64,000 bases of DNA from Adineta vaga. Its lineage: Eukaryota; Animalia; Rotifera. Positions within the stretch are counted from its first letter, which is position 1, and each line of letters starts with the position of its first letter. The notes under the pieces were generated by a model. That model saw nothing but the letters and a program-made list of their open reading frames with translations, did no database searches and was not told the DNA's origin. Shown piece after piece: positions 53,174 to 59,572 of this stretch. Location of the stretch: NCBI GenBank assembly GCA_021613535.1, contig CP075496.1, positions 5,456,001 through 5,520,000 on the forward strand, in the 5' to 3' direction. The position numbers and the translations under genes were made by a program.

Positions 53174-53403
53174 ATGACGACATTCAACGAACTACCGATT
53201 GAAATTATTCGACTTATATTTGAATATTTTACATCAGCTGAAATTGTAAATATAAATCATTGATTTCCGTATTGAAATTCAATTCGATTTTCTCCATAGG
53301 TTTATGTATTTTCATCAATCAATCCCAGAATGAAAGCAATCGCTTGTAAACATATTATTGATAATTCTAATGGTGTACTCTTGAAATTTTTTGAAAGAAA
53401 ATA
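53174..53403 (+). CDS. Very short F-box-only ORF (2 or more exons) immediately upstream of SHOC1
   Basis: MTTFNELPIEIIRLIFEYFTSAEI|VYVFSSINPRMKAI, with canonical intron 53246-53299. Confidence 0.6.
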
Positions 53404-53482
53404 AACATGTACTTTATTTTATCATTCGTGTGATGATTATGAAATAAATTGATGAAAACATAGGTTTCTCCTTCTAGATTAA

Positions 53483-56400
53483 ATGTTTTTAAACATCGAT
53501 TATGCAAAACGAGTAAGAATTAATCTATTTTATTGGAATCTTTGTCTTTGTCATTATTAGTTTAGGCTGCTGCTCGAGAAAAGAAGTCGACTAATAATGA
53601 ATCTCTTGTTACGACACAATTTGAAGATGATGATATCGATTATGAACAATTATTTGATGATCAAGAAACCCTTATGAAAACTTGCAAACCAGAAACAATA
53701 ATAAAAACAAAGAAACGAGTTCGTTTTGCTCCAATTATTCATGAAAATTCTCTAACACCAACATTATCACGTCCGTCATCTATTCGACCGACATTTGAAG
53801 TTGAATTTGATTTTGATTCACTCGAATCGTCATCAATTGAAAGTACCAAAGATAGTTTACATGTTCCGCAAAAATCCATCGATCATTTCAATTGGAAAGA
53901 TGCATTTCTCAGTGATTTACATATCGCAAAAAAAACCAAACCAACTATTATATCCTCACCATCAATTGTACAAATAGAAACTAAAACTAATGAAGATACA
54001 TTATGGGATTTTATGAAAGAATCTAATCCTGAATTATTAGAAAAATTGGAACGAACAACGAATGAAAAACAAAGACGTCTTGATCGATTTTCTATTCAAC
54101 AACCAACATCGGCTAATAAAACGAATATTGAAATTGAAAAAACAATGTCTGTACAAAATGAAGAAGGTATTCGGAGGACAGTTGATCATCAAATATGTTC
54201 ACCTAATTTAAAATAATAAACAAACAATTATTTTCTTTATAGAAATCACTAGTATTCATTGATAGAGAATGTTTCTTGTGATAACATCCAAATCGGTACC
54301 ACTATTCGAAAAATCATTGAATACTTCATTAGTTGAAATTCGACTTGAATACGGTATTTATCTTTTTCATTTCTCTTCTTAACTTCTTTTCTTCTCAATT
54401 TAATTAGATGAATTCAATCAAACACATGAAGAACTTCTACAATTCTTATTACCATATCATAAAATTCTTTGTCAAGAAAAAATTTGGCCACAAGAATATA
54501 ATTTTACTTCACCTCAGATATCTCTTCAATTGATAAAGAACATTTCCGAAGATACAAATTCATCGAATTTTCATTTCAATCGAAGTGATATTCTCAAACA
54601 TTTAATGTTTATTTATACTCTAACTTCATTTCTCTACGTATTTGCTTATTGTTCATTACAAACAGCAATACGTCATGTCGAAAATGTTATTGTACAAAAT
54701 ATGAAAAATGTTTGCATTGGTTTGTTAAAATTGATTTCGAAAAAAAATTTTCCATATTGAAATTTAGATCAAGAACGTGGAAAACCTTTATTTGATTTAT
54801 TAACAAAAACTCATCAAAAATTCGAAAATATTCTTCATCCAAAAATTTTACATATTAAAAATATGTTTATGGAGTTTTTCAATAAACGAAGACAATTAAT
54901 CAATATGACTCGACAAATATCTGAACCAAAAGTAATTAAAAACAGAACACATAAAACTTTCATATTTCATTCTTTTCTTCTTATTTAGTTTCTTCTTCTT
55001 GTTCAATATGAATCGATTGATCTTCTTCATGATATCGAACATGGTCTATCATCAATTATTGAACTTCATCCATTTGTTTACGATAAACGAAATAATATCA
55101 ATCGAGATGAATTGAATGATTTGTAAGTCCATTGAAAATTTTTCTTCATTGTTTCGTAATTTTGAAATTCAATGTACAAAGATTGTTGTATAACAATATG
55201 TTAATTATTCGTACACGGCAAATATCACCAGCAATTATTCTTCGACCAAAACGATTAACATTAGTGATCGAATATGAATATGGTGAACAAATATTACAAT
55301 GGGATCGATTTTGTCAACAACAAACAATTGCCTATATGGCTTATAAAACAATTCTACCAACATTTATAGCACCAGGTTTTGTATTTTAATAATGAAGAAA
55401 AGATTATTTTCAAGATATTTTTTATTTAGAAAAAGAAGAAACAATTGAATTAAATGAAAACATTTCTTCTTCAATAGTAGAAGAAACATTAGTAACATTA
55501 CCAGCTATTGTTTTAGCTCGACCATTAGTTGATAATTTTAAATTATTACGAACACTCGAATGTCGGTAAGAACGAATCTGAGTTGTCTATTGTTCTCTGA
55601 ATGCTGCAAACTAATCAATGTTATTTTTATAGACATGATATATCGATTATTACACGAGATTATCATCTATTGGGTATTTCAATGGATCAACAACCAGATA
55701 TCTTAATTGATTCGAGTACTTCAATGTTAATTTTTGATTTAAATACAAAACTCGATATTAATATGGTTCGACATAAAGTATATTATAACTTCTCTTAGTT
55801 TTTCTTTCAAAACATTTTTTTGTTCTATATTATTAGATTCAATCCATGACTCTTCATTCATGTCATATTCATGTTGCTATCTTAACCAGTGGGTATGTTT
55901 TCTTGATTAAACCGTTTCCTTTGATCTCAATACTAACTTCCTATTCATAGATCAATACCGGATTTTATTCTTTCAACATATATTACACCAATAACACAAT
56001 TAGCTAAACAAATTCAACAAACTGAATCAAATATTGATATTCAAGTATTTAATCAAAATAAGATTTACTATTACATCTTGATTTTCAATTCAATAGATTA
56101 AATCATTCAGTAATCTCGATGATTTTGCTGCTCATGTTGCTCAATTAGTACAACAAGAATATATAATGAAATGTATTTTAACTCCATCACCATCATGGGT
56201 AAAACTATTTGTAACATATTTCTTTGTTTTTCTATTGAAATTTCTATAAGAACGAAAAACTTTTACTTCGTCGATGTTCATCACTCAATAGTATTAGGTA
56301 TTGATTTTATCTTTAACATTTCTTCTTATATGTTATTCTTCTATTAAGTGCTCAATTGATTTTACAACGTGTGAAAAATATCGATTTATCAATAGTTAAT

Positions 56401-56538
56401 CTTGATATGTTAATCAATCAATGTCCCGAAATACCAACAATCTATTTGAAAGTAAATATGATTCTTATGATTAAATGATAAAGTTTTTTGGTTTTTTTTC
56501 TCTAGACATTTCTGTCGGATATGCACAAGAGTATTTAA
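53483..56538 (+). CDS. SHOC1: SHOC1 (C9orf84/Zip2)-like XPF-family meiotic crossover protein; about 15 exons
   Basis: Collinear blocks resembling SHOC1 as recalled: MFLNIDY; LWDFM; HLMFIYTL..CSLQTAI; LVIEYEY..WDRFCQQQTIAYMAYKTILP; LLRTLECRHDISIITRD..ILIDSSTSMLI (ERCC4-like); PSWNEKLLL..LNSISAQLIL..CPEIPTIYLKTF (HhH-like). The junction at 54150-54335 is ambiguous. Confidence 0.8.
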
Positions 56539-57248
56539 CTTTTTGTATTGTAAATATTTATATTGTATTTTTTATGAAAAAATATTTATAATTAGATAAA
56601 TAAAGGATAAGTTATCTTTGCAAAAGTGAATAAAATAGGAACCTAGATTTTACAGTTTATCTGCATATTGGACAACATTCTCAGTTTCGCAATGAAATGT
56701 TCAAAGTTTTAGATATGTCATCTGATTATAAAGAAGCTTAATGAATAGACTGATAGAATACACGTCATAAGGTGTAAAAAATAGTTTAAGTAGATTAAAA
56801 AATATAGGTGAACTACATCTATTTATAAAATATACTTCTGGGCATCAAAGAAATTCAGAGAAACAACAATAAATCACCCATACTTTACCGACATATTTTA
56901 CGAAATAATTTAGAAAACTATGTTTTACTATTGATCGAAGACAGAACCTTTAGTTTGTCAATCATTTTCTTTGAAAATATCAAATTCATAAAGACACAAT
57001 TTATGTTTAACATAAAGCATTCTCTCAACTAATAAAAACTGATTTATAAGTTTTTCTCTTGTGCATATATTTATTTATTGATATGCTATCTTCAATAATA
57101 TTCCTTGGCGACGATTGAAGAGGGGCTAGAAAGTAGAAGTTAACATATCAAATATTTATCAGAACTGATTTTTAACACATAACATTTTTTTTCTCGTTTT
57201 AAGCAGAAACACTTAGTAATAACATTTGTCGTTTATTCTTCAAAATCA

Positions 57249-57932
57249 ATGTCGGTTAGTATATAGATTTTAATCATAAAATGCTTTTTTTTATTGAACG
57301 AAAGAATTTGTTTTTTAGCGTAAACCAGTAGCTTTATCTCTTCGACAAATGAAAGGTAATTAACGAGTGAAAACTTCGTTTCGAAATTTTGTTGTTTGTT
57401 CTCTTTGAAATGGATACAGAATTACGTAATACATTTGATTTATTTGATCGAGATAAAAGCGGAGCCATATCATCTTCTGAATTGGAACAAGTTTTAATTG
57501 CATTGAATTTTGATCCGACCGAAAGATTACTTCGAAAAATAATGAAAGAAATGGATATTGATAGAAATGGTCTAGGTAAAATTTCTTTTTCTAAAACTTG
57601 TTTAATTGTAAATGTTATTTAGTTGAATTCGATGAATTTGTAAAAGTAATGCGCAATGTTTATGAACGGAAGTTTACTGATAATGAAATGCGAAAAGCAT
57701 TCCAATGTTTCGATGCTGATAGTTCAGGTATAAACACACGTCATACGTTATTTCGTACTATTTGTCGGTTTTCTTAGGTTATATTACTATCAATGAATTA
57801 CGTGAAGTCTTAAGTCGATTAAATTATAATGTTAGTGAACAGCGACTCGGTGAAGTTTTAGGTGAAATTGATACAGACAATGATGGAAAAATTAGTTATG
57901 ATGAATTTGTCCAAATGTTACAAAGTATTTGA
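57249..57932 (+). CDS. Calmodulin-like protein with four EF hands (5 exons)
   Basis: EF loops DRDKSGAISSSE, DIDRNGLVEFDE, DADSSGYITINE, DTDNDGKISYDE. Confidence 0.92.
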
Positions 57933-58499: not shown

Positions 58500-59572
58500 T
58501 TAACATATTCGTTGAAAATATTGTCGATTAAGAAACCAAAATTGTTTACAGATTTCAAGAAATTCTTTTCGAAATACACTCGATGCCAATACATAAAAAA
58601 GTACTGTAACCTGCATTAATATAGAAGAAATTGTATCGTCATTTCTACATTCTTATGAGTACTTACCGACACATACAAACATGACAAATAGACTCCAACA
58701 TAATGAATAAAGCTGAAGATTACAGTACTTTCTGTTGTTTGATGAGTTGAAATAGAATTCAAATATAACATAATGGGACTAAAGGATGATACAAAATTGA
58801 GAAATAAATAAGGAATAACTTGAAAAATGGCTAAACGAATAAAATGCATATCTCGATTATTTTTTCTTGTAGATCGAAGTTGAGGAACGGCAGCTGAACT
58901 TGCAGGAACTCTTGCATTGATTGGAATAGAACTAGCCGGTTGAACTGGAGTGATTCGTTGATGACTTTGACGGATATTTATTATTGTTAATGTACTGAAG
59001 ATAATAACAATGAAAAAAGGTGCACTTGATGTACTTATATTATAAATTGTTGAGAAAATAGCATAATTCAAATCTACGATGGGACTACATGTGGATATTT
59101 TTGATATGTAAGCAATTGGTGCATGTATGGAAAAGAGAATCCAGAATAGAAATGAACTGATGATAATCCATCGAACATTTTTCAATGAACTTTGACGTCT
59201 TAGCCAAATATTTGATGATGTCACAAGCCAACGATCAATAGATATTATACAGATAAAATGGCGAACGAGTACAAGTGAAAGAACACTAAAATATGATCGA
59301 ATTTTACAAAGAGAATTTATTGTTGAAAATCCATCATAATGTGTCCAAGATGTAATTGAACGTAGAAGAAAATTGAGATTTAAAAGAAGAATTTGAGATA
59401 AAGACAAACAAATAAAATACCGTGAACAACAATTACGACGAAGTTTACGACGACCAAAAATAATTAGATTGAATATATTAGTTAATGTACCAATAAAATA
59501 GACAATTGGAATAAAATAATCATTGATTGTTGCCTGTATTTTAATTAAATTGACAATAATTGGTGAAGCCAT
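58500..59572 (-). CDS. Rhodopsin-like (class A) orphan GPCR, 2 exons
   Basis: GTLTNIFNLIIF, LRRNCCSRYF, CKIRSY, SIDRW, seven hydrophobic segments; last exon VTVLFYVLASSVFRKEF after a short intron near 58610-58666. Confidence 0.88.

Follow-up and report, generated by a model that had tools for sequence, protein, structure and literature searches.

A probable SHOC1/Zip2 orthologue of Adineta vaga, a bdelloid rotifer

We analyzed a gene located in a 64,000-nucleotide (nt) stretch of the Adineta vaga genome (GenBank assembly GCA_021613535.1, contig CP075496.1, forward-strand positions 5,456,001 to 5,520,000; C4:5456001-5520000 of the 100.8-Mb genome of 6 contigs that was searched). The whole stretch is hereafter called the window, and positions are counted from its first letter. 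The gene occupies positions 53483-56538. A first-pass annotation, made from the sequence alone, had taken it for an apparently intact copy of the meiotic crossover gene SHOC1/Zip2 in a probable bdelloid. The host was recognized correctly, as exact protein matches to A. vaga confirm. As for the gene, our results indicate that it probably encodes a bdelloid SHOC1/Zip2 orthologue, compact (~723 amino acids, aa) and fast-diverging.

A three-frame reading of positions 53400-56650, combined with a splice-site table, yields a plus-strand gene that runs from the ATG at 53483 to the stop codon at 56536-38. It consists of 15 exons, or 16 if a 9-nt microexon is counted. All introns are of the GT-AG type and 48-166 nt long, and the phases agree at each junction. 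The spliced length of 2172 nt corresponds to 723 stop-free codons (726 with the microexon, 54243-54251). By this reading the coordinates, exon count (about 15) and protein size (roughly 700-750 aa) given by the first-pass annotation are correct. The motif blocks that it listed are also in place: MFLNIDY at the start, CSLQTAI in E4 and VIEYEY..IAYMAYKTILP in E7. The window is AT-rich (27-32% GC), and the locus is single-copy in the A. vaga assembly. The exons are as follows.

53483-53512, plus strand: E1, start codon, peptide MFLNIDYAKR
53566-54166, plus strand: E2, N-terminal module of ~200 aa, ending at the phase-1 donor AAG/GTATTC
54333-54353, plus strand: E3, short form, V/I-EIRLEY, giving the 723/726-aa full-length protein
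54269-54353, plus strand: E3, long form, from ATG 54269, the start of NCBI I4U23_018787
54408-54719, plus strand: E4, helicase-like half, contains CSLQTAI
54768-54931, plus strand: E5, helicase-like half
54989-55122, plus strand: E6, helicase-like half
55182-55375, plus strand: E7, helicase-like half, with the PF17825 block and VIEYEY..IAYMAYKTILP
55430-55565, plus strand: E8, ERCC4-type nuclease-like domain
55633-55777, plus strand: E9, ERCC4-type nuclease-like domain
55837-55892, plus strand: E10, ERCC4-type nuclease-like domain
55951-56044, plus strand: E11, ERCC4-type nuclease-like domain
56097-56198, plus strand: E12, ERCC4-type nuclease-like domain
56251-56297, plus strand: E13, C-terminal helical region
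56349-56451, plus strand: E14, C-terminal helical region
56506-56538, plus strand: E15, C-terminal helical region, stop included

The exons from ATG 54269 to the stop codon translate exactly to the NCBI entry I4U23_018787 (534 aa, hypothetical protein). Likewise, E1, E2 and a read-through tail of E2 translate exactly to I4U23_018786 (226 aa, hypothetical protein). In the public annotation the locus therefore appears as a pair of neighbouring, unnamed genes. Searches and folding were done with single exons and with database proteins (I4U23_018787, here also P0010; I4U23_018786, P0018; and their orthologues).

The gene is present throughout Bdelloidea and is under purifying selection. All exons occur in order in Adineta ricciae, Rotaria sordida, Rotaria sp. 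Silwood2 and Didymodactylos carnosus, as well as in an activated-sludge contig, a Logan contig and six metagenome contigs. Orthologous proteins were also found in Rotaria sp. Silwood1, R. magnacalcarata and A. steineri. With the complete exon series recurring in the same order at no fewer than 12 other bdelloid loci, a chance pattern can be excluded. Adineta and Rotaria sequences are 76-85% identical to the A. vaga protein, the Didymodactylos sequence 51%, and more than 100 positions are invariant. In the comparison with A. ricciae (counts pooled exon by exon), the synonymous divergence (dS) is ~0.78 in both parts of the gene. The C-terminal part has a nonsynonymous divergence (dN) of 0.079 and a dN/dS of 0.10, and for E1-E2 the dN/dS is 0.24. 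Because of the low dN/dS and the conservation across bdelloids, we regard the locus as a functional gene and not a relic.

Several details of the individual loci deserve mention. Intron 4 is missing in two of them (L017, 883-1044, and L023), and intron 2 in another two (L016, 1390-1980, and the P0039 contig). In both D. carnosus gene models (P0004 and P0008) the counterpart of exon 7 is left out, as is most of exon 8. The exon-7 equivalent is nevertheless present in the DNA (CAJNOK010005469.1, L014, 8981-9154) and matches PF17825, so these models are incomplete. Exact look-ups of I4U23_018787 and of a 180-aa open reading frame (ORF) returned no other contigs, and a junction-pattern scan of metagenomes returned nothing.

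The N-terminal part of the protein is encoded by E1 and E2. The E1 peptide is 90-100% conserved. Its ATG has a strong acceptor (ttctag) 5 nt upstream, and this acceptor-ATG layout is kept in 10 bdelloid loci. No Pfam family matched the E2 module, which carries several short conserved motifs: DDDIDYEQLFDD, KRVRFAP, FDFDSL, NWKDAFLSDLH and LWDFMKESNPEL. KRVRFAP resembles the PP1-docking RVxF motif (the Didymodactylos counterpart is KRARF), and DDDIDYEQLFDD is an acidic block. Judged by their sequence, KRVRFAP and DDDIDYEQLFDD are candidate docking sites.

The family assignment draws on the Pfam family PF17825 (DUF5587), which represents SHOC1/MZIP2/C9orf84 of animals and plants. A. vaga exon 7 alone matches this family with an E-value of 7.3e-5. 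The counterpart segments of A. ricciae (1.7e-5), Didymodactylos (3e-4) and two Rotaria species (4e-3) match it as well. In all five species the matches fall on the same profile positions (~798-849), and for every such segment PF17825 is the best Pfam match. When the whole 100.8-Mb genome was searched in six frames, PF17825 returned this locus only. The feature search of the ESM Atlas pointed the same way. Clusters named ‘shortage in chiasmata 1’ came first (0.91, 187 of 256 features shared, PF17825 carried by 95% of their members), with nine matches in that family set; ERCC4 families ranked lower (0.79-0.86). The nearest Atlas structure was likewise a PF17825 cluster, over residues 16-289.

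To characterize the fold, we used an AlphaFold2 model of the 534-aa I4U23_018787 computed with a 7-sequence alignment. According to the model, E4-E7 (residues ~26-295 of I4U23_018787) form a helical insertion domain and a RecA2-like alpha/beta domain. E8-E12 (residues ~318-468) form an ERCC4-type nuclease-like domain without the catalytic motif, and E13-E15 (residues ~476-530) are modelled as four helices. In Foldseek searches full-length XPF ranked first (E-values of 8e-7 to 1e-5, ~570-610 aligned columns), followed by FANCM-FAAP24, archaeal XPF, Zip2-Spo16 and MUS81-EME1. These matches bear out the ERCC4-like fold proposed by the first-pass annotation. Its C-terminal helix-hairpin-helix (HhH)-like region stands in part. 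The four modelled helices can be read as a tandem HhH-like end because the alignments with ERCC1 chains run on to the C-terminus (residues 532-534), and Foldseek also matches chains made of a nuclease domain and two HhH motifs (HhH2). However, the ERCC1-chain alignments over this end are loose, with a root-mean-square deviation (rmsd) of 14-18 Å, and no HhH Pfam family matched the C-terminal region.

The loss of the catalytic motif is consistent across species: in no bdelloid orthologue does the nuclease-like domain contain an ERK, [DE]R[KR] or GD motif. Given the XPF-type fold, the missing ERK/GD motif and the lack of a PF02732 (ERCC4) match on any segment of the bdelloid proteins, the protein is to be classed as a nuclease-dead member of the XPF family. 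The features by which SHOC1/Zip2 proteins are recognized are found together here, namely an ERCC4-type fold with a tandem HhH end (the latter as predicted by the model), a helicase-like region upstream and the loss of GDXnERKX3D.

Comparison with the known XPF-family proteins helps to place the bdelloid protein. The domain order is that of SHOC1: an N-terminal interaction region, a helicase-like region, an ERCC4-like domain without the nuclease motif and a helical C-terminal end. The likeness extends to the local PF17825 match (~812-848) and to the nearest ESM Atlas clusters, both by features and by shape. On the other hand, with 723 aa the bdelloid protein is about half as long as the members of the SHOC1 clusters (973-1615 aa), and no sequence-level similarity to SHOC1 is detectable in its N-terminal module or ERCC4-like domain. 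To Saccharomyces cerevisiae Zip2 (6BZF, 6BZG) it shows 11% identity and no sequence-level match, and in the fold comparison Zip2 gets no higher score than FANCM, ERCC1 or XPF. XPF/ERCC4 itself (6SXA, 6SXB, 9QEC) provides the best whole-length Foldseek matches and has the same order of helicase-like domain, nuclease fold and C-terminal helical end. Unlike XPF/ERCC4, the bdelloid protein has no GDXnERKX3D motif, no PF02732 match and no RecA1-like lobe, and membership among XPF/ERCC4 nucleases was rejected for the first two of these reasons. The top structural match for the ERCC4-like domain alone is the C-terminal pseudo-nuclease of FANCM in complex with FAAP24 (4BXO, 4M6W, 9HJO), with a Z-score of 15.0 and an rmsd of 2.4 Å over 127 residues; this pseudo-nuclease is also catalytically dead. 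FANCM, however, is much longer and has an active N-terminal SF2 helicase (DEAD and Helicase_C). The bdelloid proteins have neither a DEAD nor a Helicase_C Pfam match, and the A. vaga protein of 723 aa is modelled with only a RecA2-like lobe and a helical insertion, so that assignment to FANCM was rejected too.

A number of observations weigh against the SHOC1/Zip2 assignment. The PF17825 matches score 14.8-22.8 bits, below the Pfam cut-off of 25, and span ~37 of the 1449 profile positions. They were obtained only from segments of 58-121 aa, while whole-protein Pfam scans gave no PF17825 match, and the matches of the orthologues are not independent of each other. Confidence in the structural model is middling (mean predicted local distance difference test score of 61), and its fold scores tie Zip2 with FANCM, ERCC1, XPF and MUS81. 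Taken alone, the N-terminal 300 residues are nearer to Helicase_C clusters (0.88) than to PF17825 (0.80). Relatives outside Bdelloidea were not found: a HMMER search with exon 4 returned only bdelloid pieces, the Didymodactylos protein and a six-species profile, used in word searches, brought up bdelloids only, and a sequence search of the PDB gave nothing relevant. The search for the partner proteins SPO16 and TEX11, proposed by the first-pass annotation, identified neither of them. A six-frame genome search for SPO16 (PF15162) found no match, although the control was likewise unmatched, and small split exons are hard to detect. The search for TEX11 (PF08631) was swamped by 82 weak matches, mostly to tetratricopeptide repeat (TPR) genes; one candidate region (C2:441000-451000) turned out on inspection to be a generic TPR gene. 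Finally, MLH3 has been reported absent from A. vaga (PMC6264785).

These observations could also be explained if the gene encoded a bdelloid-specific nuclease-dead scaffold of the XPF family rather than a SHOC1 orthologue, for example an old degenerated XPF or FANCM-like duplicate acting in somatic or germline repair of double-strand breaks after desiccation or radiation. We consider this unlikely. It would agree with fold scores that do not favour Zip2 over FANCM, ERCC1 or XPF, with the sub-threshold PF17825 matches, with the generic look of the helicase-like half alone, and with relatives confined to bdelloids and an undetected SPO16. The DNA-repair gene sets of bdelloids are, moreover, unusual and expanded (PMC6264785). 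Against it, PF17825 is matched repeatedly at the same profile positions, while PF02732 and Helicase_C go unmatched in Pfam; PF17825 finds only this locus genome-wide; and the whole-protein feature search places SHOC1 clusters above ERCC4 clusters. In addition, the genome carries canonical XPF and MUS81-type loci at other places. Searched with PF02732, it yielded loci at C6:11.58 Mb (77.8 bits) and C4:12.44 Mb (40.8 bits), the SHOC1-like locus not being among the matches, and XPF, MUS81, EME1 and ERCC1 have been listed for A. vaga (PMC6264785). We discarded a third ‘ERCC4’ locus (L022, C3:16427754-16431029), as its weak ERCC4 match is spurious; its very long open frame looks like a non-ribosomal peptide synthetase, probably acquired horizontally. 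Overall, the SHOC1 identity proposed by the first-pass annotation is partly supported: the protein is an XPF-family pseudo-nuclease, and SHOC1 is the only family that the sequence tools indicate. Segment by segment PF17825 is the best profile match, but below the cut-off, and folds do not discriminate.

The first-pass annotation had called the gene intact and had flagged positions 54150-54335, between E2 and E3, as a place where transcripts might include a stop. This weak point is real, yet the stop is avoidable. The elements of the junction, besides the two forms of E3, are listed below.

54167-54220, plus strand: read-through tail of 16 codons with a stop at 54214-16; end of I4U23_018786 if intron 2 is retained
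54243-54251, plus strand: candidate microexon of 9 nt, acceptor ttctttatag/, donor CTA/GTATTC, frame-neutral onto 54333
54283-54284, plus strand: lost ancestral intron-2 acceptor, gatAA/CATCC in A. vaga versus gatAG/CATCG in A. ricciae

We compared this junction with those of A. ricciae, Rotaria sp. Silwood2 and eight further contigs, including environmental ones. The phase-1 donor AAG/GTATTC (54166/54167) is strong and conserved in every bdelloid locus examined, and each of the compared loci offers it one or more canonical in-frame acceptors into the ..EIRLE.. exon. An in-frame phase-1 intron links the N- and C-terminal parts in 8 loci. These parts form one continuous ORF without intron 2 in L016 and in the P0039 contig, and the gene models of Rotaria sordida and Didymodactylos join both parts. 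Because the other bdelloid lineages examined join the two parts, we conclude that the ancestral product was a single polypeptide. In A. vaga the ancestral intron-2 acceptor has mutated from AG to AA, and the public annotation splits the locus exactly at the flagged junction; both facts count against an intact gene. The strongest acceptor (54242/54243) runs into a TGA at 54260 unless the microexon donor is used; the homologous 9-nt microexon is used in an A. ricciae gene model (P0012). For the conserved phase-1 donor, 54332/54333 alone remains as a canonical in-frame acceptor that avoids a stop. Two other routes, from the weak phase-0 donors 54150 or 54180 to the acceptor 54265/54266 and from the donor 54146 to the acceptor 54267/54268, were set aside in favour of the canonical path from 54166 to 54333. 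Based on these splice sites, one intact full-length A. vaga product, with 54166 joined to 54333 with or without the microexon, is possible. The word ‘intact’ may thus apply, since a stop-free canonical path exists, but the annotation divides the locus at this very point.

Alternatively, the A. vaga gene might be functionally split, its main products being a 226-aa N-terminal adaptor and a 534-aa XPF-like protein. The former would result from retention of intron 2 and end at the stop/AATAAA at 54214-20. The transcript of the latter would have its 5′ end at the acceptor 54242/54243, possibly through spliced-leader trans-splicing. Docking and DNA binding would then be uncoupled, or re-joined non-covalently. 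Such an arrangement is doubtful, yet it has a number of points in its favour. Both NCBI models match exactly; at 54283-84 the ancestral acceptor has become AA, and use of the strongest acceptor brings in a stop. An AATAAA (54215-20) overlaps the read-through stop (54214-16), and a strong acceptor and an ATG follow within the next 55 nt. The same layout of poly(A) signal, acceptor and ATG is found in ten bdelloid loci between E1 and an upstream F-box-like mini-ORF (described below). Positions 54285-54332 look coding-like in comparison with A. ricciae (the changes are largely synonymous, and an indel of 18 nt keeps the frame). A. ricciae also has a read-through tail of similar sequence with a stop at the same place. 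ATG 54269 can be argued both ways: it has no counterpart in A. ricciae, where the region is an intron, which speaks against the split and at the same time leaves room for a two-protein reading in A. vaga. Against the split stand the canonical in-frame path with its conserved donor and the N-terminal module, which is still under purifying selection along with the rest. Moreover, gene predictors have divided the locus in Rotaria species too, despite a clear in-frame join there, which makes the split model itself weak evidence.

The same lost acceptor, together with the premature stop reached through the strongest acceptor when the microexon donor is not used, might even suggest a decaying pseudogene left from sexual ancestors. 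This is highly improbable: all other exons are open, their GT-AG sites are intact, dN/dS is 0.10 and 0.24 in the two parts, and the identity levels and the more than 100 invariant positions given above point the other way. A different question is whether a ZMM gene has been caught mid-fission in A. vaga, with one SHOC1 gene turning into two cistrons, which we think improbable. The changes involved could be the loss of the ancestral acceptor, a new ATG arising where there had been intron, and an internal poly(A) signal with a strong acceptor behind it, possibly one that serves spliced-leader trans-splicing. The resulting cistrons, a docking module and an XPF-like DNA-binding module, may stand behind the 58-aa F-box mini-gene in an operon-like array. 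If true, fission would mean that, in an animal whose meiosis is non-reductional, recruiting partners and binding DNA fall to separate products of what was one crossover factor. A two-cistron split after acceptor loss may be the most unusual aspect of the locus, and it would be local to A. vaga.

Returning to the probable SHOC1/Zip2 orthologue, its presence agrees with what is known of A. vaga. The ‘putatively asexual’ framing of the first-pass annotation is dated, as a non-reductional meiosis I with bivalent-like pairing and chiasma-like structures has been described in A. vaga oocytes (PMC9710870), and spontaneous crossovers and gene conversion have been reported (PMC13564844). MSH4 and MSH5 are present (PMC6264785). 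A SHOC1-like factor would fit the published pairing, crossovers and MSH4/MSH5. Since meiosis-like pairing and crossovers were already published, retention of a ZMM factor is expected and not paradoxical.

By analogy with Zip2/SHOC1 biology (PMC13245411, PMC5859969 and PMC6357729), the bdelloid protein may act as the XPF-like subunit of a Zip2-Zip4-Spo16 (SHOC1-TEX11-SPO16) complex. It would bind DNA without cutting it; human SHOC1 is stated to lack nuclease activity (PMC13245411). The ERCC4-like/HhH region would pair with the ERCC1-like partner SPO16 and bind branched recombination intermediates (D-loops, junctions), and the N-terminal module would dock a TEX11/Zip4-type scaffold. Acting with MSH4-MSH5, the complex could stabilize and protect crossover-designated joint molecules between homologues in oocyte prophase. 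In A. vaga, these activities might contribute to the pairing of homologues, to crossovers, to loss of heterozygosity and to the repair of breaks in the non-reductional meiosis I. For a single A. vaga polypeptide to do all this, 54166 would have to be spliced to 54333, with or without the 9-nt microexon. Taken as a whole, this explanation, a SHOC1/Zip2 orthologue serving as the XPF-like subunit of a meiotic crossover complex in A. vaga, seems likely to us.

Surveys of the bdelloid meiosis toolkit have covered SPO11, REC8, DMC1, HOP1/2, MND1, MSH4/5, MER3, ZIP1 and RED1 and have left out ZIP2/SHOC1, ZIP4/TEX11, SPO16 and HEI10. Our literature search found no paper linking bdelloids with SHOC1, and the assignment is therefore new as an annotation; public records call the protein ‘hypothetical’ or ‘unnamed’. 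What is new is the annotation of a very divergent member of a known family, biologically expected given the crossovers and MSH4/MSH5, and the result is incremental rather than paradox-breaking. Nonetheless, a conserved SHOC1-like gene under selection adds a crossover-designation factor to an animal with homologue pairing and crossovers. It also offers a marker and a knock-out target for asking whether A. vaga crossovers use the class I (ZMM) route, a question that stands although MLH3 is reported missing.

The genomic neighbours of the SHOC1-like gene in the window are the following.

53174-53245 and 53300-53404, plus strand: F-box-like mini-ORF of ~58 aa, two exons, weak Pfam F-box/PRANC matches
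57413-57929, plus strand: EF-hand (calmodulin-like) gene, just downstream of the SHOC1-like gene
58616-59572, minus strand: intronless ORF of 318 aa whose hydrophobic periodicity is that of a seven-pass membrane receptor

The mini-ORF is followed by AATAAA signals and then by the acceptor just before E1. Adineta, Rotaria and environmental bdelloid loci share it at this position (L015, L016, L018, L019, L023 and L026-L029). In these loci the layout, AATAAA and then a strong acceptor lying 3-5 nt ahead of the E1 ATG, looks operon-like or trans-splice-like. Some Adineta and Rotaria gene models fuse the mini-ORF in frame to the SHOC1-like gene. In A. vaga such a fusion is blocked by a TAA at 53480-82, and here the mini-ORF is a neighbour or possibly an upstream cistron, not part of the SHOC1-like protein. 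Several public models wrongly merge the EF-hand gene with the SHOC1-like gene. A. ricciae and Rotaria sordida share the order of a leucine-rich repeat gene (minus strand), the F-box mini-ORF, the SHOC1-like gene and the EF-hand gene.

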